From positions 20,708,001-20,772,000 of the forward strand of contig OZ241829.1 in NCBI GenBank assembly GCA_965202585.1: a DNA stretch of 64,000 nucleotides. Direction: 5' to 3'. The notes below the pieces were generated by a model. That model did not search any database, had not been told where the DNA came from, and worked only from the letters and a program-made list of their open reading frames with translations. Source of the DNA: Thalia democratica (lineage: Eukaryota). Positions 963-37,900 of this stretch are shown here, in pieces. The position numbers and the translations under genes are program-made. How positions within the stretch are numbered: the first letter of the stretch is position 1; every line of letters starts with the position of its first letter.

Positions 963-3900
963 TCAATGCATTTTTGGAAAATCCTTGTTGGGTGCAGTGT
1001 AGTGATTGACTGGCATCATGGGGTTGAAACTTCCGTTGCTAGGGAACGAAGCGTTGCTAGGCAGTGAAGGGTTGTTAGGTAACGACTTGTTGTTGCCAAG
1101 GACACCAGCTAGATGTTGGGGCAGCAAGTTGCTATGGAAGACCCTGCCGGCTGCTTGCTGGTACATTTGAGCCATCTGAGCAAACTTCAGTTCGTTCTGC
1201 ATGGCAACTAACGGCACGTTGCTAGGCAAGTTGTTACTAGGGAGGTTGCTGTTGTCAGGGGTTCCACCGGAGTTGCTGCTTATCGCAGGAGAGGAACTCA
1301 AACTGTTCGACAAACTCTGCTTACTTGCAGTTTCAGCACTAGAGGGCAACATTGATGGCGTCATCAAGTTTTTACCCATTAATCCACTGGCAGCGATTAC
1401 GGGAGGATTCATAAAGGGAAAAACACCGGTTGTGGCTCCGAAACAAGGAGAAACGTATTTCTGCGGCAACAAGTTGTTCTGTGACGTCAAAGAAAACAGG
1501 GGGTTCCCGGCTGAAGCAGCCAACTGCATATTCTTGAAAAGATCAACCTGGTTGGCTTGGTGCGTGGTGGGGGAAAACCCTGCGGTAAAATTGGGGAAGA
1601 CTTGACTCGGGAAAGCCCCCGGAAATTGGTTGCCATAGAAGTTCTGCATGGCGAAGAAACTCTGGTGTTTGAGGATCTCCAATTGGCTCGAATATTCCCG
1701 TTTGTTTTTTGACCTCCTGTTCTGAAACCAAGTTTTTACCTGTGAAAAATAGAAACTGCGTTGGTAAGATTTACAAATAAATAAATTTTTTGGGAAAATA
1801 CTTTCAAATTTAATCAAAACTCTTCTAGTAAGTAATAAAAACACGCAATAACTGTTAGCTGTAACAGTGAAAAACTTTGTGAGAAATATTAATATAATGT
1901 TGTTTTTGGTTAAAGTTTTGTAATAGAGTTTACAACCATTTTCAACTAAACAATAAAAAATATAATTGAATATTTAAACAAAATACAAACTTGATCTTCA
2001 GTCAGATCGAGTTCAACTGCCAGCTCTCGTCTCGTGTTACCAACCAGGTACTTTTCTCTGTTGAACGCCAGCTCCAAAGTTCTGAGCTGCTCAGGAGTGT
2101 AGTTCGTCCTGGGTCGCTTCACGGGCTCCACGCGAGCCTGATCTTCCCTGCTCCTCTTCATTGAAGAGCTTTCACATGCAGGCCTTCTTTCACCTGTTGA
2201 ACTTACACGTGCAGGTCTTTTACCAACAGGCGAATCGCTCGCGCCATGTCTTCTGTTGCATTCACCTTGAAAGCCGCTTCTCATACCATCACTCAAATGT
2301 TTGCTTTCACTTTTTAATTCTGCTACTCGAGATGTACTGTTGCTTTCGGTCTCTTCAACATTTCTGCTTGTCGCTTCACTACTTTCGCTCTCATACATTT
2401 CTCTGATGTTTCTTTCTTCCGCATCAGATCTTCTCAGCATCCCTTCAACGGAAAATTTTCTTTGACCTTCTACGGTTGCTCTGCTCCCTCTTGCCTCGCT
2501 CTCGTAACCACTTTTGCCAGATTGCATGTCTCTTCTCTCGAAACCAATGTCTCTTCTCTCAACGCTTTCGTGTTTTACGCACCGTCTCTCGTTTTGCACA
2601 TCTCTTCTCTCGTTTTCAGATGCCGACTCAGGCCGGTGTTCAGCACGCTGTACTGCAGGTTCGCAACTTCTACCGTTGTGACTAGAGGCCGGAGTTCTAC
2701 TCTCAGAATTATGAGATCTAAACCCAGGGTTGTTGAACACCACAGGTTCAGAGTTTTCAGAAGCGTGCGGTGTGAACTCGGAGTTTTCAGAAAAGCCCGA
2801 TCTAAACTCTGAGCGCAGAGACTTTTGCGCTCTTGAACGTTGCTTAGATATGTTGAAAGCAAAGTCGGACTTCAACTGGTTGCTCCTGACGTTTGCTTCA
2901 GGTTTAACATCAGGGCTCGTACCATGTCTTACGTCACATCTCTCTACGGCCCTTACGTCACGTCTTAGATCGTGTCTGACGTCACTTTTTTCGTCACGTA
3001 CAGGTCTCACGTCAGGTCTTGTTTCTTCGGATTCCATGGCAGGATTCTCGTCTAAAAAAACAATTAGTAATAAGCACATAGCTTTTTTATACAAACTAAA
3101 CTTGTAAATAAGTGTAGAAGGCTTTGTTTAACTTAACTTACTCTTTAACAACAGCTCGTAATATGGTAAGCGATTGTATCGAAGATAGATAGTAAAGAAT
3201 ATTCTTATTTTTTAAAGTTTCAAGGTATTAAACATACTTTAAAGCTGGATCTTTGATTTTTATTATAAAAGGAATACAAACTAAACTTGAAATAAAATAT
3301 TATGAAAGTAAAATTAAAAAACAATTAATTAAACTGTTAAAAACTATAAGTTTAAAAAAATTTTTAGAATAAAAACTATTAAAAACGATAGTAATTTTGA
3401 CATCTAAACATTTTGTTTTAAATGTAAAAACATACTTTATTCAATTTAAAGTAAACATTATATACATACGTTCATTTTGCTTTAATCCTTTTATGCTTTA
3501 TAAGATTTTTTTTAATTAAAAATATTATATTAAGGCTAAATTAACTAATCAAAGTAGGTGTTAAACCAACGAGCAATCTAATAGTAATAAACACGTTTGA
3601 TATTCTAGTAATTAAAGTTAAAGCACCAGGAAGTTAAAGAACCTCAATGTAATAAGAACCACTTCACTTGATCACTTTTATAATTAATTTTAATTAACTC
3701 AACTACTTAAGCAATACATGTTAAGTGAATAGAAAAATGATATTTCCTTTCTATCAAAAAATTTAAATTATAAAATTAGAAACTGTTAAACTACTCTATT
3801 TGCTTTAGTTATTTAAGTTGTTTAAAACATTTCAATCTTATTCTTCGCTTCTTAAAATTAAGTTTCTGTTGCTTTATACTTTCCAAAAAATAAATAAGTT

Positions 3901-6900
3901 CAACATTACAAAGCTACCAGTTAAGCTTGTACTTTTTATAACCAATCTTAATGTTTATATTACACATAATTTTTTACATGGTGTACATAAGATTCTTAAA
4001 TATTCTTTTTTTTTCTTTGTATTTTATATTTATGCTTCAAATTTAAGTTTAATTATTTAGACTTTACTTTATATAATTTTATTGTTTTGGTATATTATAC
4101 TAGTTATTTCCAGCTACAAGTAGAGGAACTATTAAATAACTAATAACGAATACACATGATAATATAGAAACATTTTTGAAACGCAGATAGGATAAACTTT
4201 ATTGTTTCTTTTTTAGGGACAAGCTACATTATAAAAGTCAAATAACTAACAAAACCTTGACGAAAAATTAAAAATACTGAAACAGCTTAAACACATAATG
4301 CTTACAAATAGCCTTGGGAACAAATACTAGCTCTGCTACAAATTAAGTATTCACAATTAAGTAGGTAATGTTTAAAAAAATTAACAAAATACTTGACAAA
4401 CCTAAAAACACAGTAAAGTTGGTACCTTTTAATTCCTTACCAGTTAAATAATCTTTTAACTTGCTGTCCATAAAGAAAATGCAATGTTTTAATCTACTTA
4501 GCTTCCTTATAAATTGACTGATAATTATAATACCTTCTTTTAATATAAGCACTTATAAGGTGTTTAGTATTGGTGTATTGTTTTACTTAATTAAGTTGCA
4601 AGTGATTAACGTTTAATTATTAAGTAAATTAGTTAATCACTTTATATTTATATGATAAGTAAAAGTTTAAAATTTGAATATTGTCAGTTTCAACATTTTA
4701 GTTGTTTTAGTGTGAACTGTCAGAAAGATACAGTTTCATTGTTTGTAAGTTTAATTTTAACTAACTGTTTCAGTCTAATGCTTATGAACTTTACAAAACT
4801 GTTTATGCTTTTAACCAAAATGCTGTTTTAAACTGTGATTTAGTAGTTTGTAAATTGGTTAGCTTGTATTGGTGTAAACAGACAAAAAGATTCAGTTTCA
4901 GTTGTTTGTGAGTTAAATTGTAATTAATTGTTTTTAATCCAACACTTGTGAACTCATTATGATTGTTTATGCCAGTGCTTCTGAAATGGGGTTCCGCGGA
5001 ACCCTAGGGTTCCGCGAAGCCTTTCGAAATTTATAAAAGAAATTTGAATGAAAAAAAAAACACAGATAATAAAACTTTAAAAAAAAATGGAACATATATA
5101 ATTATAGCATTCATTGATCTGCTTAGTGTGTGTCTAGTGGTAGGACTTTTAATGGGTATTCATTATTAATAGGTGTCCTGGTTGTGCAAATTTTTTCAAA
5201 ATTTTTGAATTTCTATTGTTAGTGAAATCATAAAAATACTGGTATTATCACTAAAGCAAACAATGTAGGAGCAATCAAAACTAATTCTGAATGTTTACAC
5301 AATAAAACCAAACAAAAATCTTTATCAGAAACTTATTTCTGGCATATTATATTGTTTCAAATGCTGTAAAAATGTTTAAAAAGATGTATATTAGCTTGAT
5401 ATAAAATTAAATATGTATAAAAGCTTATTTTTTACTTAGAAATTGCTACTATAATTAAAAAAAAATCTGGCCGGGCCTATAAAATTTTAACAGAAATTGA
5501 ATTTGAAATAGTTTTTTTAGACTTACATGATAAAAAATAAAACTCTAATTTTTTAAAGTTGTGGCCAGGTCTTTAATATTTTAACAGAAATTGAGTGTGA
5601 AATATTTTTTTATGTTTACATGATAAAAATGTTTAAATGTATATGTGTTAGCCAGACAACAATTCCTATGTCTAATGACACCATCCAATCCAGGGTCATG
5701 GATATGGTTAGTGATACAGAGGAGCAACTACTGGCGAAATTAAAAGCCAGTCTAATTTATGCTGTGCAACTAGACGAGTCCACTGACGTAAGCAAGAAAG
5801 CCTTGTTACTCGTTTTTGTTAGATATTGTGGGCAGGAAGGATTCAACGAAGATATATTATTTTGTGGAGAATTACACACAAAAACAACTTCTGTTGAAGT
5901 AATGAAATGTGTCAAAAATTATTTCATAAGCAAGGGTTTAAAGTTAAATAAACGTGTCGGCATTTGTACTGACAGTGCAGCGTATATGACTGGGTCCAAA
6001 AATGGTGTAGTGAGGAAAGTGAAGGATAAAGCAGTTAAAGCTAAATGGATACATTGTTTTTTACATAGAGAAAATTTGGCAACAAAACATATTCCTTCTT
6101 GTTTACAAGAAGTTCTTTCAGCGTCGATTAAAATTGTTAGTTTTATTTAGAAAAGTGACACGAAAGTCAGATGTTTCAAAGACCTATGTGAAAGTTTAGA
6201 TGCTGACCATCTGCGACTTCTTTATCACAACGAAGTTAGAAGAAGAAGGCTATCGAAGGGGCGGACACTAGTTCGTCTCGTTGAATTAAAGAATCAGGTG
6301 TTTACCTTTCAAAAAGATGAAGGCTCAGAATTAGTGAAGTTCTTTGAAGATGATGTTTTTTTGGCAAGGCTAGCTTATCTCACTGATATTTTCAAAGAAT
6401 TGAACGCTTTGAACTTAAGCGTGCAAGGGAAGCAAAATTCCATTTTTGTCATGACAGACAAGATAGAGGCGGTTAAAAAGAGAATTAACTTTTGGAAGAA
6501 GGTTAGCAATGGTAATTTTGCGATGTTTCACCGGTTTGATGAGGCCCATGAAAAATGTATAGAATTTAATTCTCTGACAAAATATACAACCACCTTGATC
6601 TTTTGTCTATAAAGTTACATTGTTTTCCTGAAGATGTTCGTATTGGAAATATATGGATTTTGAATCCTTTTATGTGTGATATTGTTTTAGATAAAGTGAA
6701 TCTTCTTACAGATACAGAAAATAAATTGCTGCAACTATCTGAAGATAGCAATTTAAAATAGAGTTTCAAAAGGAAGGAGCTTTTAGATTTTTGGATATAT
6801 GCAATTTCAGAGTACCCCGTCTTAGCAAAGCATGCAGTAAAATTTATTTTACCATTCTCCACTACTTATCTTTGCAAGTCCGGCTTTTTGCATGTAACAA

Positions 6901-20039: not shown

Positions 20040-23000
20040 AAAAATTAAGCTAAATTAGAAAAAAAAATTTAATAATAATAAAATAAAAACTATTAAGAAA
20101 AATGTAGTTTCTGAAACTTGTATTGGTAGAATTAATTTTAGTCTAATATAAGTAAGAAGAAAAAAACTTATATTAATGCAATAATAAGTAATATAAACAG
20201 CTAACAAATAAATATAACAAAAATATAATAAAAACTGGGTAGTAGCAAATAAACAATCACGCACAACAATATATTTCTCCATCAACAGACCAAAACCAGC
20301 CAATCATGATCAGAGTAGACACAAACAAAATTGACCATACATATATTAACAGAAACAGATAAAAATAACAACCAAAAGCAACTAATCAAAATCTGCATGC
20401 AACACAAAATACTCAACCACAGCACTTTAAACATATTCAGTATACTGGCTCAACAAGATTTTTTGTAACTATATTTAAACTGATCTTTTTTAGGTTTTTA
20501 AAAATTTCTGGAACACTAGACCACAACTTAGGGCCCAAATACTTGAAGGAGTTTAGGCCAAGTTGTGTTATAGGTCTTTCAATAACAAAATTATTATTTT
20601 TTGAATGTCTTGTATAGTGTGTATGAACCATACTTACTGGAGTAAAAGAACTGTGGTCAACCTCGTATCTTCTCAAAGTATTCAGCATCAACTTGCAAAT
20701 TAAACACTTCATTAAATTTCAGAATACCAGTTTTTAAAAACAATGAATTTGTTGGAATCAGTGCAGGTACGCGACAAACATATCTTACAATTCTTTTTTG
20801 CATACAAACAATTGGTTTCAAATGACAACTAGCAGCACCACCCCAAACAGATATACAATACAGGATATGAGGATAAAACAAACTATAATACACCATTTTC
20901 AAAGTACTCTTATCCAAATAATATCTTAATTTTGACATCATAAAACTACTTCTCGAAAGCTTAGACTTAAGGTATTTTAAATGTGCCTTCTAATTTAAAT
21001 TATTGTCTAATACCACACCTAAGTATTCAATATTTTCACTCTGGTCAATCACAAAACCATTTACCTTAACACTAAATTCATTCTTTTTTGCAGTTCTATT
21101 AAACTGCAAAAACTTAGTCTTTGAATAATTAATAAAAAACCTATTTTTACACAGCCATTCATCAATTTTCTTCAACTCCATATTTATAACAGCATTAACA
21201 TGGTCAATATCACAATGTTGATAACTCAGACAATCATCGTCTGCAAACAATCTCAATTTAATATTTGTAGCTGAAAATATGTCATTTATATATACAAGAA
21301 ACAACAATGGACCAAAACAAGAACCCTGAGGTATCCCAACATTCAAAATTTCATGCTCAGAAACAACATTATTTACAACAGTAGACTGACTTCTATCTTT
21401 TAAATAACTTTCAATAAAATTTAACATTGAGCATTTTATATTATAACATTTAAGTTTTGATATTAAAATTTTATGATTAACAGTATTAAAACCTTTATCC
21501 TTTATCAAGATCCAAGAAAACAGAACAAATTACTTTTTTTTTCACCAGCCTCAATTAGTTCCAACAATCTGATTTACTGCTAACTCAGTCGTACTATTTT
21601 TCTAAACCCATATTGTTTGCAGTGCAGTAAATCATTTGACAGAAAATAACCACTCAGTCTCTCACACATCAATAACTCAAAAATTTTAGAAAAAGGAGAC
21701 AAAGGAGAAATAGGTCTATAAATATTTACATCGTTTTTTTATTAATTTCATAAATCGGCACTAGCTCAGCATATTTAAGAGAATTAGGAAACACACCATA
21801 CTCAACACAACTATTATACAACATAGAAAGGTAGGGAGAAATTATTTTTCCACTGAGCTTCACAAAACGAATACTAGGGATATCAGAACGCACACTCTTG
21901 TTAGGGTTCATTGTTTTGATATAATTTTCAACTTCGCTCGCTGATATATTCTTAAAAACAAAACCATTTTTTACAGAATCTATTGAAAACTCATTATAAT
22001 CACAAGCAACATGTGTTCTTTTTTTTATTAAATCATCAGCAATTGACACAAAATTTTTATTTATAACATTACTAATTTTTTTTTGGTTCAAAAACAACAT
22101 TACCATGCAAATCAAGCACACCATTGATTTTTGGATGAGAGATAGGCTTAGTAGCAACAATATTGTTAATTATTTTCCACAACACTTACTGTTTGTTTTG
22201 TTTTTGTTCACAACTTGTTTAAAATAAAGTATTTTAGATCGTTCAATAACCCGATGAAGAATATTTCTATATTTTTTGAATAAAAATGAAATTTTTTTTT
22301 AATCTTTGATGGCAAACTTAAACATTAGATTTTTCTTTTTAATTGAAACAATAATCCCCTTTGAAATCCAAGGTTTAGCTTTTAGTTTTTGATCTTTTTT
22401 ATTTAAAATTTTAATCGGTGCATGATAAAACACTGTGCTACCAAACACACTCTCAAACTCATTCCAACACTCATTTATATCCTCACCTTTTGTAATACTC
22501 ATTTTCAATTTACCCAAGTTCCTTCTAAGATCATTCAAAGAAAACTCAAACATCAAACTTACTAAAATCTTGAACTGATTTTTGATAACACAATTAATTT
22601 TTATTCATTAAACATTTAATTTCACAAACAACAGGCATATGGTCATATATATCATAATCTACAACATTAACATTTAGCTTTTTACCCCTAAAACTAGAAT
22701 AAACATTGTCAATCAAAGAACTAGAGGAGCAATCAGAAAAAAGTCTAGTTGGGGAATCAACAAATTGTTTAGCACAAGCACTAGAAACACAATTCAAATA
22801 GTCACAAGTACGCTGATCAAGTCACAAATAAGTTTATATTTACATCACCACCAATTATATTGTTTTTTTATTTAATATATCTATAAATTCAACAAAATTT
22901 TCTTTAAAAGTATTAAATTTAGAGCTTGGGTGTCTGTACACATTACCTAGTATAAGATGTTTATTGTTTCCAAGTTTAATAGAGATCCACAAATCATCTA

Positions 23001-23430
23001 CATCACACTGTTAAATGACACACCTTCTACAACCTCAAAAGAGTGACAAGCTCTTATAAAAAATGCAACACCACCAGATTGATTACTATTAGACAGCTTA
23101 TTTACAAAATCATACCCATGCAGTTTACCCATAAAAGGTTTCAGACTAGTCAACCAAGTTTCACAAACACAGATTATATCAGGTAGATTTTTCACTAAAT
23201 TCAAAAATTCCTCAATTTTATGTAGATTTGCATTTATGCATCTAATATTCATGTAAACAACACTAATAGTGTTTTCTTTTCCAAAATTCACACAATTTAG
23301 TCTAAATATTGGTCAAGATCTCTTCTATTAATATTCATCCTATTAAGTTTATTGAAGCAATCATAGTCAAGATCATCAACATTCTGAAATGGAAAAACAT
23401 ATTTTTAACATAGATCACAATAAAATATAA
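20040..23430 (-). mobile_element. Decayed non-LTR retrotransposon (CR1/L2-type ORF2: APE endonuclease + reverse transcriptase)
   Basis: ORF fragments: endonuclease YMNIRCINAN...DIICVCETWL (22998-23291) and DHMPV (22594-22797); pre-RT YGVFPNSLKYAELVPIY (21726-22160); RT core GIPQGSCFGPLLFLVYIND and LFADD (20990-21508); C-terminal tail (20437-20941). Many stops and frameshifts are present. Boundaries are approximate and the 3' UTR may extend to about 19745. Confidence 0.93.
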
Positions 23431-26900: not shown

Positions 26901-28894
26901 TTGTAAATGAATATTCATACTCCAACAAAAATTTTTTTTACATATAAAACAATTGTTGAATATAGTTTAATATCCTTAATTAATAGTTCAAACTAAAAAA
27001 ATGTATTATAAAGTTTGAGCAAGTTTTCACAATTGCAGTTATTAATAAAAAGTAAAACTAAAGTTGCAAATTTTTTCAAACTAAATCATATTAGTAAACT
27101 AGTATTTTTAGAAACAATGTTTTAAATGTTCAAATTATTTAGCTATACATAAAAGTATAAATTAAAAGAAACTCAAAACTAAGCAGTTTTTAGTATAGAT
27201 AGAAAGCGTAAATATTTATTTGTATCAATATGATATTAAAAGTAAACAGCAATTAAAACTCAGAGTTTTAACAACAATTAAAATAAAATCCTTTTGTTAT
27301 CAAAATGTAAGCAAGTGCTCATTTAACAAAAATTTTACCGTATACCAAGTATTATGTAAAAGGAAAACATTGTAAATTTGAAAGACGTTCCGGTTTTAAA
27401 CTTATAAAAATAACGTTAAAAAAATCAAATTATTTAAAGCTAATAAATTTATAAATAAGTATTAGTAAAAACTAAAAAGCTTATTGTTTTTAAAATGTTA
27501 AAAAAAAACAAATTTTAAACTTAAACTAAAAAAATACTAATCTGTATTTCACTAAGCAATTTACTTATTTTGTTTATTTATTTTCTCTTTAAATCCTACT
27601 AACAAATAAACTTAAGCAAGTTTATAGATGTTGTTTGCTTAATGCTTGATTTTAATAGTTTTAACCAAAATAGCAAAACCAAACTTTAAAAAATTATTAT
27701 ATGTTTTAGATAGAAATACTTTAATTGATTTGAAAAATCTAAAGCTTTCTTATATCAAAATAGTTCGTAAAAACTGCAGGTTATTAACTATCATATAGAA
27801 GCATTTGCGACTAATTTTCTTAGTATAGTTAATTAAAAAATCAAACATTTTATTAATATTATTAAAAAATGTTTTAGTATTTTATAGATTGTTCCAACAG
27901 CTAAACTAGACAAGGTATACTTTACTTATTGATTTCTAAAAATAGAATCAGAAAATATTTACTGCTTTAAACTTTAAGTATTTTGTATTAACAGCAGTTC
28001 AATTTTTTCAAAAATAATTATAAAAGTACATCTATGCTACTTTATTTACATAGTTACTAAAAACTAAAGTAACAGTTTAGTTAAAGTTTTTATTCCTTTA
28101 AAAATTATGCTTTAGGAAAAGTTTTGATTTGTATCATTGTGATAAGTTTACTGGCTATAAGGGCGTTTTGTTTTAAAAAATAATTTCAAAGCTCGTTTAA
28201 AGTTTACACTAAATTGTGTGGTGCCGTAATTACCATAAAACTTACATGTTATTTTACGCAAACGGCAATACCCTTGACAACTTGGAAAAAACGAGCTCAC
28301 TTTAAGGATGTCGATTCCCGTAAACTTTATTACCAGCAACCTGACAATGGCCGCTTATTTGACTTGGAGGTGTTTTTATCGGAACGCAAGTTTCTTACGC
28401 ACTGTCTTGTGACGTCACAATAAAATATTTTTGATTTGTCGGAACGCCCCCTCTGCAAACTTGAAAGGTGTTTATAGTTTTGCGTTTGGTGTGAAAAATA
28501 GTTATATTTGTCTTTCAAGTTTGGAACTTGCAAGAGCTTTTTAAGCTCGTAGAGTAGGTATAACTTTAGATTTAGTTTTTACAGATAATTATAAAAATAA
28601 TTAGGAGTGTAAGCTAATAATGTTTAGCCTTTTCAGTTGAATTTTTATAAAGTTAATCTAAAAAAGCTGGAACACATTAGAAACACGATTTAGTTACATA
28701 TTAAGGGTAAAATGTTATACTGTATTCTATATTGTTAGTTTAAAAACTATTTAAAAACATTTTAAAACAACTGCAATAACAAATTAACATAAATTTCAAA
28801 TGTATTTATTGAGATAAATTTTTACATTATTTATTTTGTATTCAAAAATATTACAGACAATTATAAACGCTAAGTTAAAGCGTATTAAACTAAT

Positions 28895-31448
28895 ATGAAG
28901 TTTTTGTTGTCAACTGTACTGCTAGTTGCCCTCGTGACAATTTCACAACAATCTCTTGTCAACCAGGAACAAGAAGATGAACTTATTGGCGTTAGTTTAA
29001 CTTATTAGGTTACAATTGAATCACAGTACTAAATACGCTAAGAAAAAAAATAAATTAAACATTACAAGTAGTTTATTAGTTTAAACTTAACACATTTCTG
29101 AGGTTATTTAAGTTATTGAAATTTTATGTAAAGGTTTGTACATTGAATTTTTGCTAGTCTTAATTGTTTTGTAAAATTATCAAAAAATGATAAAAAAAGT
29201 TATGTCTTATATAAAAATTACGTTTGTGTATAAAAAACTTGTTTAATATTCTATGCCTAAAAAAGTTAAGTACGACTTAAAGCTTGGTAAATAATAGTAG
29301 CTTGCTTTTTAGATTTACGAAAAACATTCACGTTTTTATTAAGTAATTTAAATAGTAATATATTTTGTTACATAAATAATGTGCAGGTAATCAAAAAATG
29401 GACAAAAATCTATGAGGACGGCATCAAAGAAAAAGAAGCCATTGCAAAAAGAGGTTAACTTTTACTAAATTTGTTTAGTAGTTTTAGTTTTTAAAATGAC
29501 TAAACAACTTATAAATGTTACTAAAAGTAGAATTAGTAATAAGTTTAGCTTAAATTCAAGTTAAGTTACTAGTAGTACCTAAACTTTACAGCTATTAACT
29601 AAACTGTGGTCTTAAATGTAAAGTCGAATTTGCAGTCAAATCTTGTAAATTTACAAAATTTAAACTATTATTATTATTTTTCACTTTATACTTCAGTTAA
29701 TCACTAAACTATTTTCTTAAATATAGCGATGAACTACGAAGCCAAGGTTTTTAAACTCACAAAACTTAAACTATTATTATTACTAATATTTTTTAACAGG
29801 CGGACAATACCAGTCCCAGTCGCAGTACCAGGGTCAGGGTAACGGACAAGGTCAGTACCAACAACAAAGTCAATCGCAAAGTCAGGGACAGGGCCAGGGT
29901 CAGTACCAGCAACAAAGTCAATCGCAAAGCCAGGGACAGGGCCAGAGCCAGTCTCAAGGACAATCCCAAGGTCAGTCTCAGGTTCAGATGCAGTCGCAGA
30001 GCCAGACGGTAACCAACACCAACAACGTCAACATTCACCTCGGAAATCTGCAAACTGTGGTTCACCATGTCAGTCTGATTTTATAAAAAGTTTATTTAAA
30101 AAAATGCTTGTATGAACTCTGTGTGCTTATTCACTTTTAGCTATATAATAAAAGCTGTAAAAGCATTGTGAGAATATAGGTTTATCCTAACGGATATTTA
30201 AAAAACAGTTTTACCCACGGTTGCAAATACAACGTTTTAAAAACTTTGAAAATAAAATGATATTTAAATTTTGTAGACTTTAAAGATTCATTAAAAGCAT
30301 TGTATGTAGTTTGTTTTTATGATTTAAACTTTGAAATTAAAAGAAAAAGTTTAGCTGAGTAACTCAAAAAGTTTTACTTTAAAATTTTTTACTGTAATTT
30401 TTTTTTTGGAAGGCAAAAGTCACCAATTCAAAAAAAATTTTTATAACAACTTTAATATATTTAAAAAAACGACATATTTCACTGTCAAAGTTGTTTTGTA
30501 GGTTTTTTTGTTTATTCCAAACGTAAACGCACCTGCGGCTAGATTTTAATATCATAAAACTTTATGAGCCTTTGTTTTTTAAAACTCTTTCAAATGTGTA
30601 CATGTGTATGTATTGAAAATTTCAAAAAGTATATTTGTGAACTAAGCTTGACTTTCATGAAGCTTTGATAGTCTTTGTGTTCTTTGTTTACACTTACGTT
30701 TGAGCTATTCAACAAAATAAAAATTATAGCTTTAAAGCTTTAAAAACTTACGAATGGGTAAAATCTATCTTTTTAGTATATTTTTGTAAGTGTACTTAGA
30801 TTTAAAAGAATGCGTTTACTTATGTCACCAAATATATTTTAATATTAACAAAACTTGTTAGTTAAGTTTTAACATTTTATCATTGAGTACTTAAATTGAT
30901 GTTTTATTATTCTAACAGCAAACTTTAAAACAAAAAAGGATTGTAGTAATTATTGATAAAAATTAAAAATTAATTAATTTTTACAGTACCACCACTACTA
31001 TCCGGAAAAAGTTAGTTTTGTTTGTTATTAAACTAAAATTTTGTTTTAAATAAAACTTAAGTTTAGTCAGCAAACTTAAGCTTAGCTTTAAACTCATTAA
31101 AAGATAATGTTTACTGACCAAACTAACTTTGTATTGTTAAATGGTTTTAAGAAATTTTTAAATTCTACAACTTATATATTTTGTTTTTAAATACAAAACA
31201 ACTAGATAAAGTCAACTAATGTTAAGTTAACTATCTTGTTTAAACTTTATTTCTAACAGCATGTTTTACAGCCAAACAGAAAACCAAACAAAAAGCCCAA
31301 CAAAAAGCCAAACAAAAAACCGGGCCGTAAACCCCAGAAATCACCAAAAAAGTCCCCTAAAAAGTCTCCAAAACACTCCCCCAAAAAGAGTCATTGGAAA
31401 ACCAAGTCCAGGAAGCATTCCAAGTCTTCCAGGTCATCAAAGAAATGA
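28895..31448 (+). CDS. Orphan secreted low-complexity protein, 214 aa: signal peptide, pro-segment ending in KR, Gln/Ser/Gly block, His/Tyr linker, Lys/Pro/Ser tail
   Basis: Exons 28895-28990, 29387-29453, 29800-30068, 30987-31010 and 31260-31448, all GT-AG with matching phases (0,1,0,0), 645 nt in total. Translation: MKFLLSTVLLVALVTISQQSLVNQEQEDELIG|VIKKWTKIYEDGIKEKEAIAKR|GGQYQSQSQYQGQG...QTVVHH|YHHYYPEK|HVLQPNRKPNKKPNKKPNKKPGRKPQKSPKKSPKKSPKHSPKKSHWKTKSRKHSKSSRSSKK*. Confidence 0.8.
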
Positions 31449-34400
31449 ATTCAATAATTAAGAACCGAAACAAACTATCAATATTTTCTAGACGTTTAAT
31501 TTCACATTAATGTTGCATTTGTTTTAATTTACACAATTTTTTTCATCGAAGTTATGCTACTCTGTTAATTTAAACGACTAAACAATTGATTTTTAAATGT
31601 AAAGTATGTATTTATAACACACATACTGTTATTCTAATAAATTAAACACGCTGTTAGAATATCTATAATTATTAATTATTTATTTAATATCAATACTTAA
31701 ATTAAGTTAATTACTAAAGATATAAGTAATAACTTAAATTAATGTTGAGTTATATGTATAGTAAGCGAAAAGTGAAAACTTTTTATTATTTTTATTTTGC
31801 ATTACAATTTAAGCTTTAGTTAAATTAAAAGTACTTTTTATATAATTTTTCTTTTAAATAAAAAAAGTGTTGAAGCTAAAATAAAACTTAACTAGCTTTT
31901 AAATACTATTACAATTCTACAAGAGTATTAATTGACTGAATGTAAAAAGGATAGTATCTTTACAGGTGCAAAAACAATTTACAGTTTATTTTAAATATTT
32001 AAAAGCTATAAAATATTCTGAAATAACTTAATTTAATTAGAAATACAAATAATGTTTTCAAAGTTTTTTTTATAGGTGAAATGTAAGCATATGTCGCTAA
32101 CCTTTAAAGTTTAATAAAAACATTAACAATATCATTAAACCATCAACATTTAGTTCAGGAAAATAGTTTGTTGTAGCAAATCCAATACAGAATGTAAATC
32201 AATGTTACTATAATTAAAAAACAGAACCACCCTAGTATTCTAAAATTTCTTTCTCACTAAAACTAAAGCTAAAAATTTACCTTTAAAAAGTTTTCTAAAA
32301 CCAAGATAAATGTCTTTATATTATTGTATTACTAGCTTTGTAGTTACTTAAATATTACAAGCTTGAACAAAAAGTAAATTGTTATAATCATTTAAAAAGA
32401 TTAAACTTATTGTGTAAACTTTTAGTCATTTACTTTAATGTTCCTACTTTTACCTTTAGATAGAGGTCTTTTTACAAGTAAAAAGTTACTTTCATACCTT
32501 TTTAGCGGCAACTAAAATGAAGTTAAATATACATAATTTACATGATTAATTTGTTTTTTAAAATTGTTTCAGTAAAAGTGTTTGATAATCTTTGCATATT
32601 TATTTTATTTAGGTTTAGCTTACGACTAAAGTGTAAAAAATTATATACTAAATCATCGACTATTGCAAAAATGTTTTTCAATTTATCAGAAAATTTTACA
32701 AAAATGTTGTATACATCATTAACATTTGAAAATATTTCTTCACGAAAAACTAAAAAAGGCTAAATATTTAAAAATTCGCTATGATATATTTTATTAAGCT
32801 GTCAGCTTTAAATTTATTTAATTTTTTGTAATTATGCAATTAAAACTTCCAAAGTTTACGAAAACAAGTCACTCATGTATTACGTTAATCGTGACTAATT
32901 AGTTCACGAAAAAATGTATATGTTTATATACATGGCCGCGTTCTAAGCTATTACAGCAAATAGGTTCTTTTAAAACCACAATGACTTGTAGACTTTGTGA
33001 GCATTAGTTTACGACTTTAATATAAAGATTTATTGTTACAATTACATAAATTTAATTTTTAAAACTATTAGTAAAAACAAGTATTTAGATTTTCTGGTAA
33101 AATAAAAAATTATACTGTTTTATTTAACTTATATCTTTGCGATTATACTAGTTTTTGTTTTTCAAAGTTAAAAGTATTTCAGTGGTCTATAAAAGTAAAG
33201 TTTTAAACCTAAAAGCTAATTAAGCAAAGCAATGTTTTGGTTAATACTTATAAAATATTATAAAAATACTAAACATTAAATATAAAGTACATAAGATTTA
33301 AGTATTTTTGTACCTTTATAGTTAAATAATCTTTAACTAAAATAAAACAGTAACAATTAAAAAAAATCATTTGAGCTTTTTTAAATTTTCGGAATAGTAG
33401 TATGCGATTAAACTTTTGAGAAAATATTTTTTTTTAAGTATAATTATATTTTTAGATTAAGATTGCTTGAGTCACAAGGTTTGTTTCTTTGTCATATTTT
33501 TTGGTAAAGTAGCGAAAATATGCATTCAGGAAAAACTTTTTCATAAAAACTTAGTCAGTACACGTTGTTGTTGTTGTATACAAGCAACAGTTTTTTTTGA
33601 TACAAAATTCTGGAAATGTATTTACAGCTGTTGTTTATCGCAACTTTTTACATAACTTGTTGAAATAAAAAATAAAATATTTAAGCTGTTTTTGTTTTAC
33701 AAGGTTTTTAATAATCCTGGGTCACGATATTACTAAACATTATAAGAAAAAAATCACGTAAAATGATTTTCTTCGAAATTTCAATATTTTACAACGTCTT
33801 TTTTAATTTACAAACAATTGTTGTGTCACGCTAATAGTATAACAGTATATAAGTATTTTTGTAATTAGTAAGCTATTTAAGAAAGATAATTAATAAACAT
33901 GCTGTATCAAGTAATATTTGATTAGTTCACCTTAGTTAAAAGGAATAAATGCTTAAAAGTATTTAGTGAAAAGTGTTATGATATATTTATTGCAGACCTT
34001 CAAAATTTTGTTTAAAACGAATTATGGTTTTATTTAAGTTTTAAAGACATATAAAATGTACGACAAAATAATTTTATATAGTGTTATAAAATCAGAAAAA
34101 TTAAATAAAACCATAGTTCAAACTAATTATTTTTTTTAAGATTAGTGGTTAAATCAATGCCATTACTGTTCTAACGTATTTAAGTAGTTTATTTTAGGAT
34201 GAGTAATCTTTAAATGTATAACAGTTTTGTATAGATAGCCAGAAAATTATGAAAAATTTTCAAAAAAAAAACTTTATTTGTGTTACTATGTTTTACTACT
34301 TTGCATTCTACAAACTATTTAAAGCCCCTTGAAAAAATAATGTCAAATAAATAAATAAATCGGAAACCCTTACAAATTTTTGTTATCTTTAAGCGTGTGC

Positions 34401-34971: not shown

Positions 34972-37900
34972 ATGAGACAGTTATGTGCACTAGTAGCACT
35001 AGTTGTATGCTTTATACAAAGTAAGTTTGTTTTTATACTACTTTAACTTTAAATTCTTATTTTAATTTAAATATTCTTAGTTATTTCAATTTTTATACAT
35101 AACTTTAGTATGTGTCATTATAACTAGATGGCACGTAAATACATTTAGGTGTTAATTAATATGATAAAATCAAAAGTAAACTAAGCTTAAAAAACAGTTA
35201 CCTTAAAACTACTCAACTGTTATATCAAATTATAGTATTATTGTCTATTTTTAAGCTTTTTTTGATTATGATTACAGCCAAGTCATTTTAGACTGTACTT
35301 TTAGATTGAAATATCTTTAAAATGATAAGAATACCTAAAAACTCTAATATTTTTAAGCAAAACAATAAATACTAAAGCAGCTAAAAAGTGCCTTTACTAA
35401 AAAAGTTTTTTATACTAAATTGTTGTAATTGTATAATGTGTGGCTTTAAAAAAATAAAGATCTTAATAGATCAACAGTTAAAACTATTTAAAAGTTGTTA
35501 TGAACTACTTTAAAGGATATATTTTTAGTAAATAGAGTTTTTGTAACTAGATAAAAAATCTTAATAATTTTTTGCAACAAGGAAAAATTGGTTTAAGACT
35601 TAAAAAAAATTAGTTTGCGTGCGTTTTATTTATACACAAATAAAAAATGCGGATTAAGGTAAAGGCGTGACTTAATTAATTGGAAAAAAAAAATTATAAA
35701 TATAGTCGTACATTGCAGCATATTCTTGTAAGCTCTGTTAAAAAGATGAGTAGTTTACTTTAAAAATATTTCAAGTTTCTACATTGAAACAAATGTAATT
35801 TTAGTAAAATATTTAAAGTCAAACATTTCAAATAAAAGAATAGGCCAAGAAGTTGAAGTTAATCATAAAAAATGTTTTGTATTAATTTCATACCATAGTG
35901 GTTTTAATATCATATTATGTTAGTTCGAAAACCAACTAATATACATATAGTATTTTGCATTTTATATTAGAGTTTTCAGTTCAAAAATAATTTGAATTTT
36001 TTCACACCAACCGTAGCCTTACATAAAGGTTTACTAAAAGGTGCGATGTCGACCACTTTTGAAAAAAAATCAATTATGCATACTAAAATTCTGACGTAAT
36101 AATGCAGTAAATTAACACTAATTAAAGTAAATTTTCACTTTATCAATCAGTAACTGTAAATAGCCCTATACAAAGTGATCTAAGTGCTTTTTAACTACTT
36201 ATGGTGTATTAATGCGCAAGCTAAATAAAAATACAAAATTAAAAATTAATTTTTTTATACAATATTTATAACAAATCACCCAACAGTAACCCCGTCCCAC
36301 CAGCAGAGCTGCAGCGGAGTGGCGCGCGACAAGAGGCAAGTGTGCGGAGTCGTCGGAGGAGAGGACAGCAGGAGTGCTTGTTTGAAGGTGAGGGGGTGCT
36401 GCTACGACTCGAGCTCCAGCCCCAAGTGCTACATAAACACCAGTTAGTTTGTATTAGCAAATAATAAAAAAATAACTTACAAATAGTTGCGACGACTTAA
36501 ATTCAAGCATCAAGTGTCACATCAACACGAGCTAGTTTGTTAAAATAAATAATAGAAAATTAATAAAAACTAATTAATACGATTGAAGTTGAAGCCCCAA
36601 TTATTACATCAATACAAGTGAGTTTGAGATGACAATTAAAAAGAATTATTTCCAAGCAAGTTGCAAGAAACCGTTTTTACCATAAAAATATTGTATTAAA
36701 CAAGTTTATTTTTTCAGACGCCAAGTTTGACGGGTTCTCGCTGACGCAAGCCAAACGGAAACTGGGAACTCCCCCAAACAAAAACATCGACATGAAACCG
36801 CTGCAGAGTGTGGCGAGGAACCTAAACGTTTCTTTGGTGAGTTTCTTGTATTAGGTAACATTAGAAACAACTAATAAAAACTTTTTCTCAACGTTTCATT
36901 GGTTCGGTTTTTTAATAGCTACTGCTATTTTTTGAGTTTTTGTTTTATACAAACTGTATGAATAAAACAAAGTTCAGTTTGTTTTCGCTGTATAAGGTGT
37001 AGATAGTGATGATAAAAAAAACTAAATAACTATAAGTTTGTACTCGAATAAACTGCTCTTTTTAAGTGACGCTATAAATAAAACTATTTTTATTAAATTT
37101 ATGTCGATTCAGCTGCATAGCTATGGCTAGTAAAAGAGACAAAAAGTTATTAGTCTGAAAACATTTTTACTTTTACTGCGTAGCTATGGCAAGTAGTATA
37201 TATGAAAAAAAAAACTATTAGAGTGTAAATGTTTTGTACTTTTTGCTTCTGTGATATACTATAATCTTAAATTATGAATCTTAATTGGTGTTATATGTAG
37301 TAGATTTTCTTAAATTTATTTATCTTGCAGTCGGACAAGAAAGATTTCCAGGGCAGACTTGGCATGTTCAGCACTGTAAACACTTTCACAACCCTCGCTT
37401 TCGGCTTTCCTAAATGTCCACTCAACGTGCCACTGTGTCAGAGGTTTGAGACAAAATATTTTTTATTAAAATAATAATTACTTGTAAACAGTATATTGTG
37501 CTTTTTAAACAGTTTGAAAAACTCTAAATAAGTAAAGTATGTTAGTTGTTATTTCAAGTAGTGTTATCACGTTTTAAAGATCTTTTGGATATCTGTTTAA
37601 AGACTTTTGAAATAATTTAAAACAATTTTACAGATAAATGAGTAAAACCTGTTAAAGTTTTGTATTTGTTGTAATTATTTTTTTGTACACTGTATAAACT
37701 ATTTTATACAAATAAAAGAGATCTGCTAAAAATAAACTTCAAAACTTCAACATTTGTTTATAAATAGCAATCCCCATTAACAGGTTGCTATGCCAACCGT
37801 TCAACCCCAACGCTGAGAAGAACGCTAACGAGTGCTACAAGGACCCCAGATGCTGCTTCGATGCCGACCTATTCGTCAACAAGCAGATATTCGGGGACAA

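Follow-up and report, generated by a model that had tools for sequence, protein, structure and literature searches.

Gene model at the locus

We analyzed a 64,000-nucleotide (nt) stretch of the genome of the pelagic tunicate Thalia democratica (GenBank assembly GCA_965202585.1, contig OZ241829.1; C5:20,708,001-20,772,000 of the 802-Mb assembly), hereafter the window, which is very AT-rich (28.7% G+C) and carries on its forward strand a probable protein-coding gene whose predicted product combines a signal-peptide-like start, a charge-free Gln-rich block and a Lys-rich tail. The sequence from 28600 to 31800 was read directly and the proposed exons were joined by script, yielding five exons and a coding sequence of 645 nt, or 214 codons plus the stop (Table 1). 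All four introns are of the GT-AG type, with acceptors that are pyrimidine-rich and end in CAG and with donors that read, in order, GTTAGT, GTTAAC, GTCAGT and GTTAGT. Exon 3 sits in a 99-codon open frame which, if the following intron were retained, would reach a stop five codons further (VSLIL-stop), and exon 5 has an alternative in-frame acceptor at 31271/31272. An earlier annotation made from the letters of this stretch (the sequence-only reading) had proposed a gene split over five exons, for which canonical borders, a 214-codon frame and a coding-like composition were found here, but the splicing itself was not confirmed.

The ends of the gene were read from short motifs. An in-frame TAA stands three codons 5' of the ATG at 28895, and the AG upstream of it is compatible with the spliced-leader trans-splicing of tunicates, though it proves nothing. 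At the other end, the candidate polyadenylation (poly(A)) signal is weak evidence, since AATAAA is common by chance in DNA of 21% G+C.

Table 1. Positions of the gene model, its repeats, the downstream neighbour and the two look-alike genes (window coordinates unless a contig or segment is named)
Feature	Position	Strand	Remarks
Candidate leader (trans-splice) acceptor AG or 5' untranslated region boundary	28855..28856	+	38 nt before ATG; sequence reading
Exon 1, 96 nt, phase 0 end	28895-28990	+	Start codon, 17-residue signal-peptide-like segment, acidic first half of pro-piece; donor G/GTTAGT
Exon 2, 67 nt, phase 0 to phase 1	29387-29453	+	Basic amphipathic second half of pro-piece, KR at end
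Exon 3, 269 nt	29800-30068	+	Charge-free Q/S/G/Y block, then Asn/Thr/Val-rich segment to HH; donor CAT/GTCAGT
48-nt (16-codon) tandem duplication in exon 3	29850-29952	+	Tandem Repeats Finder: period 48, 2.1 copies, 92% matches
Candidate micro-exon 4, 24 nt, encodes YHHYYPEK	30987-31010	+	Acceptor TTTTTACAG/, donor /GTTAGT
Exon 5, 189 nt with TGA stop	31260-31448	+	Lys/Pro/Ser/His tail
12-nt in-frame repeat arrays in exon 5	31272-31321 and 31344-31388	+	Tandem Repeats Finder
Candidate poly(A) signal AATAAA	31636..31641	+	188 nt past stop; weak evidence
Neighbour, trefoil (P-type) exons	about 36287-36445, 37.8 kb, 39.1 kb	+	Pfam Trefoil, 2.9e-6
Neighbour, several TSP1 exons	42.9-45.9 kb	+	
C1 65.44 Mb gene, two-exon reading	1932-1369 of segment L002, running into C1:65432000-65441999	-	
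C1 46.15 Mb polyprotein gene	C1:46150000-46159999, exon 1 ATG near 6800, exon 2 6499-4776	-	

Evidence for coding

Composition, frame and polymorphism each speak for a coding sequence. The G+C fractions of exons 1 to 5 are 0.40, 0.34, 0.53, 0.42 and 0.41, compared to 0.21-0.23 in the four introns, with 0.22 in the one after exon 1, and 0.21 in the downstream flank. Exon 1 finishes in phase 0, whereas exon 3 can be read in its open frame only after one preceding base, and the 67-nt exon 2 alone reconciles the two. The Gln/Ser repeat of exon 3 holds its amino-acid pattern while mixing TCN with AGY serine codons and CAA with CAG; replication slippage would not produce such a mix, and the repetition therefore appears to be maintained at the level of the protein rather than the DNA. 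The 802-Mb genome contains a single copy of the gene.

A second haplotype of the locus is present in the DNA contigs; between 29299 and 29548 it has 6 differing sites and a 5-nt insertion in 250 nt (about 2.5-3%). Such a density points to very high heterozygosity, so that a comparison of haplotypes can be used as a test of coding constraint in this genome. Seven variants fall within the exons, six of which are third-position changes that are synonymous in the frame of the model (two in exon 2 at 29410 and 29413, two in exon 3 at 29852 and 29888, and two in exon 5), with the remaining one changing Thr to Ile. Were the same seven read in the shifted frames, 0 would be synonymous in one and 2 in the other, and the binomial probability of six in seven is about 0.007 under a transition-only expectation and 0.0004 under an all-substitution expectation. 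We also considered an antisense open reading frame (ORF) of 91 codons over exon 3 and rejected it, as it is a Leu-rich mirror of the CAG/CAA repeats and both variants there lie on its first codon positions. Supported by composition, frame logic and synonymous-biased polymorphism, the locus is probably a real protein-coding gene; for the exact five-exon product the balance tips only slightly in favor of the model.

Predicted product

In order, the product consists of a 17-residue signal-like start, a 37-residue pro-piece, a 69-residue Q/S/G/Y block, a 19-residue Asn/Thr/Val segment, the cluster HHYHHYY and a 65-residue tail. The start, MKFLLSTVLLVALVTIS, has Lys at position 2 and a 14-residue hydrophobic core with a mean Kyte-Doolittle value of 2.75, and Thr and Ser occupy positions -3 and -1 before Gln18; heuristic inspection of the core and of these two small residues agrees with the signal peptide that the sequence-only reading had named. 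The same reading had described an acidic pro-piece ending in KR. The KR is there, closing the pro-piece as residues 53-54 with Gly55 next, but the pro-piece as a whole is about neutral (net charge -1): its first half is acidic, its second half basic and amphipathic.

The Gln-rich part came out much as it had been described, that is, as about 70 residues of Q/S/G/Y repeats that include a 48-nt unit present twice: residues 55-123 comprise 35 Q, 14 S, 13 G, 4 Y and a single N, V and M with zero charged residues, and thus form an uncharged Q/N/S/G/Y-rich stretch by a threshold of at least 60 residues, and Tandem Repeats Finder recovered the duplication (Table 1). The proposed HH-YHHYY linker is encoded in the model as HHYHHYY, but candidate exon 4, which supplies most of it, is unproven. 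The strongly basic tail was confirmed, with a net charge of +26, three copies of PNKK and four of SPK[KH]; most of its KK pairs have Pro next. The whole product contains 42 Gln and 30 Lys, and the mature form would be ~160 residues long, with a mass of approximately 18 kDa and an isoelectric point of about 10.7.

Homology searches

The queries were single exon products, and the length window applied in the word-indexed searches would exclude full-length relatives, so that only the representative search with exon 3 was free of that limit. In that search, phmmer against 1.84 billion representatives returned four low-complexity matches, which included neither the gene itself nor an orthologue. 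Pfam, run on all larger exon products, gave no family above threshold and only a sub-threshold TrAA12 match; word-indexed searches of a 5.8-billion-protein collection with exons 5 and 3 returned nothing; and the ESM Atlas gave no usable match to the same two exons. A literature search for a known tunicate family of Gln-rich or Lys-rich secreted proteins found nothing relevant. In these searches the gene product fell into no known family, as had been suggested from its sequence, although secreted low-complexity proteins restricted to one lineage are as such a familiar kind. The accompanying label of orphan agrees with the lack of any homologue in these searches, but the layout is not unique, as two other genes of this genome open alike with a signal peptide, KR-G and Q/S/G repeats.

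Look-alike genes in the same genome

We were led to a gene on contig C1 at 65.44 Mb by a weak match at the DNA level (67% identity across some 180 nt of low-complexity sequence). This gene encodes a signal peptide, the junction TKR-GFQSQSQ, a long (GQSQSQ)n array and the ending GYYK-stop. A protein search with the product of this gene pointed in turn to one at C1 46.15 Mb, in which a signal peptide and short pro-piece lead through QES-KR-GFQGQSQSQ into a 574-codon exon of 58-residue Q/S/G/H units, each with an NKR end. The spliced 5' end of the latter gene matches, with few substitutions, a 113-residue entry (P0006) of a marine eukaryote transcript catalogue, and this polyprotein gene is therefore transcribed in ocean plankton and spliced as read; we saw no named relatives of it.

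All three genes have a signal-peptide exon, an intron placed at KR-G or just ahead of it, and a long charge-free Q/S/G repeat exon. The recurrence of the KR-G opening in all three, and of KR at each repeat boundary in one, speaks for KR-G as a likely processing junction in genes of this type. The open frames of both look-alikes end in Tyr-containing motifs that close with Lys (GYYK and VYLPK) and resemble the YYPEK of candidate exon 4, and a 21-nt in-frame string shared with the C1 65.44 Mb gene is suggestive only. In contrast to the Thalia C5 gene, the two look-alikes have other intron phases and positions, carry His where it has Tyr, and neither has a Lys/Pro/Ser tail.

The surroundings of the C1 65.44 Mb gene are of interest in their own right. 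On its strand, some 530 nt further downstream, there are CBM14 chitin-binding exons (Pfam, 3e-7), followed by exons that by eye look fibrinogen-related; there is no separate signal-peptide exon between these and the gene, and a phase-1 donor just 5' of its stop would join the CBM14 exon in frame. The gene and the CBM14 and fibrinogen-like exons may be parts of one ficolin-like lectin gene in which a Q/S/G stalk would replace the collagen stalk.

Proposed role and alternatives

To our knowledge, almost no protein components are known for the gels of pelagic tunicates, such as the tunic and the feeding mucus. We propose, with confidence evenly divided, that the locus is a genuine protein-coding gene of a pelagic tunicate, single-copy and lineage-restricted, and that its product is a KR-processed, secreted, two-block component of a structural, gel or adhesive matrix. 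The N-terminal signal peptide would bring the protein into the secretory pathway, and a convertase of the Kex2 or proprotein convertase (PC) type would cut the single Lys-Arg site and free the 37-residue pro-piece; a plain KR without Arg at P4 is not a classical furin site. What is left would be an intrinsically disordered chain of ~160 residues with two chemically opposite halves and a short His/Tyr cluster between them. The charge-free Gln/Ser/Gly/Tyr half would self-associate, as prion-like or hydrogel-forming low-complexity regions do, and the Lys/Pro/Ser half, a protease-resistant polycation, would bind polyanions such as the sulfated glycans of tunic or mucus. Because Pro follows most of its Lys-Lys pairs, and Pro after a dibasic pair disfavors cleavage by PC convertases, the tail should itself escape dibasic processing. 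A component of extracellular material, be it tunic, mucus net or similar, is the most likely role on these features, with which cross-linking by transglutaminase or through Tyr and His would be compatible.

A more elaborate version, which we consider rather doubtful, is that the protein acts as a diblock: a gel-forming block would be linked, through a His/Tyr hinge sensitive to metals or oxidation, to a polycation that docks on sulfated glycans or coacervates, making it a building block of the transparent tunic or mucous filter and part of a lineage-specific KR-G Q/S/G toolkit that includes the plankton-expressed polyprotein.

Several findings weigh against the two-block matrix protein. The sequence-only reading had seen here a hidden orphan secreted low-complexity protein, and the gene itself is upheld by composition, frame logic and synonymous bias, but the functional part, namely self-cross-linking by transglutaminase, Tyr/His cross-linking, binding of DNA or other polyanions and a cationic defence peptide, draws only on composition, and the function we name is a guess. 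A search of public runs for the locus returned no RNA run and only two runs from one study, both of which span introns and exons alike without any predicted exon-exon joint and are therefore genomic DNA. A 15-billion-sequence collection contained no protein matching exon 3 or exon 5, though the look-alike polyprotein gene is represented there. Composition-adjusted BLASTP against the two look-alikes gave no alignment at E<=100 with one and E=62 with the other; we therefore rejected paralogy with them as demonstrable homology, there being no significant similarity after composition correction, and the resemblance would be architectural, not shown homology. The interval from exon 3 to exon 5 contains 23 AG..GT segments that are in frame and free of stops, and candidate exon 4 is just one of these. 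Exon 5 can be read in a second open frame as well, and its three variants (2 synonymous in the model frame vs 0 in the other open frame) are too few for significance by themselves. The inclusion of candidate exon 4 and the joining of the basic tail to the Gln block are thus unproven. That the product is secreted, is cut at KR, includes exons 4 and 5, self-associates, binds polyanions or is cross-linked in any way is inference only.

The two-block design depends on the junctions of exons 3 to 5, because an unspliced donor at 30068 gives a short Gln-only protein. A shorter gene, which we judge unlikely though deserving of weight, would be either a Gln-rich protein of exons 1-3 with a retained intron, or exon 3 joined to exon 5 without the micro-exon. 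In its retained-intron form the Lys-rich stretch would lie outside the protein and the two-block design would be an artifact of the model. The open frames of both look-alikes do end right after the Q/S/G block, the frame of exon 3 does meet its stop five codons past the donor, and the number of candidates for the micro-exon and the few variants of exon 5 leave room for such a product. On the other hand, exon 5 has twice the G+C of its flanks (0.41 vs 0.21), its acceptor is clean, rich in pyrimidines and correctly phased, it contains 12-nt repeats in frame, and its variants match the model's frame rather than the other one that is open. Exon 3 is followed by a canonical donor, GTCAGT, and the micro-exon carries on the His/Tyr run, extending the HH that ends exon 3; it also ranks best of the 23 candidates by G+C (0.42, the highest) and splice sites. 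Skipping exon 4 preserves the frame, with exon 3 joining exon 5 directly.

That the locus is non-functional, being either a set of fortuitous open frames around a GC-rich minisatellite that is itself in frame, or a young untranslated proto-gene, would agree with the lack of any transcript, homologue or domain in the searches made and with the tendency of low-complexity A/C-rich DNA to stay open in several frames. Such an origin would have to account for five compositionally distinct exons with canonical borders and mutually dependent phases, for a signal peptide exactly at the first ATG, for six synonymous variants in seven and for serine codons of mixed class, unlike those expected from replication slippage, and we regard it as improbable. 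Hardly more credible, and if anything slightly less so, is a precursor of a cationic defence peptide, in which the tail or the amphipathic pro-piece would be antimicrobial and the Gln block a carrier. The layout of signal peptide, pro-piece and dibasic site, together with a tail of +26, is what such a precursor would have; against it, there is no dibasic site between the Gln block and the tail, which makes this role less likely than one in a matrix, most KK pairs precede Pro, disfavoring convertase cleavage, and the tail is Pro-rich and non-amphipathic, with no similarity to known peptide families in the homology searches.

Comparison with known proteins

The two parts of the predicted matrix protein each have counterparts of like composition. 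The repeated S-P-K-K/H tetrapeptides of its Lys-rich tail recall histone H1 and sperm basic proteins, in which SPKK is Suzuki's minor-groove-binding motif. These are nuclear proteins without a signal peptide, and H1 has a globular winged-helix domain; unlike H1, the predicted product starts with a signal-like segment, and Pfam finds no H1/H5 globular domain in the exon products. The Gln block is similar in composition to prion-like domains of the FUS/Sup35 type (uncharged Gln/Ser/Gly with spaced Tyr), without sequence relationship, and such domains are mostly intracellular. Likewise, the transglutaminase substrates loricrin, SPRR and seminal-vesicle proteins join Gln-rich and Lys-rich parts in one chain, again with no sequence relationship.

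A further parallel comes from the flatworm adhesion protein ap3, a secreted low-complexity polycation (Gly/Arg/Lys/His/Ser, GRKHS) of about 3,700 residues that is Gly/Arg-rich, serves temporary adhesion and is expressed in the adhesive gland (PMC9229212). In ap3, as in the product described here, a signal peptide comes before a low-complexity stretch in which Lys, Ser and His predominate (PMC9229212). This stretch, and likewise the tail, can be read as the part of a secreted material that carries the charge and would provide cohesion or surface binding. In contrast, ap3 has no Gln block, and the tail here is 65 residues long and Pro-rich; the likeness is one of composition and homology is not expected.

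If expressed, the gene would supply a compact and easily synthesized secreted protein with halves of opposite physical chemistry, and with it a handle on how pelagic tunicates build their gels. The locus also illustrates how, in very AT-rich genomes, gene finders overlook genes that are small, low in complexity and split over several exons. Its present value is that of an entry on a candidate list, not of a discovery.

Neighbouring genes and other features of the window

The downstream neighbour lies on the same strand and has its own signal-peptide exon at 34973, followed by trefoil and then TSP1 exons to at least 45.9 kb (Table 1). The combination of trefoil and thrombospondin repeats is unusual, and each of the two domains is typically found in secreted proteins. 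We considered whether exons 1-4 could be the 5' end of this trefoil/TSP1 gene and rejected it: the neighbour has a signal-peptide exon of its own, and it cannot accept exon 3 or exon 4 because both end in phase 0, whereas a phase-1 partner is required by its first trefoil exon. The donor of that trefoil exon is GTTAGT, as it is for exons 1 and 4 of the model, and since the exon is backed by Pfam, this type of donor occurs in a domain-supported exon of this genome.

Upstream of the gene, on the reverse strand at 20437-23291, lies a degraded retroelement of the long interspersed nuclear element (LINE) type, with broken consecutive ORFs that include a reverse transcriptase (Pfam RVT_1, 1.6e-15). 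Elsewhere in the window, large ORFs on the reverse strand at 963-3094 include a stretch resembling a homeodomain (VKTWFQNRRSK), and on the forward strand at 5620-6612 lies a pair of transposase-like ORFs.

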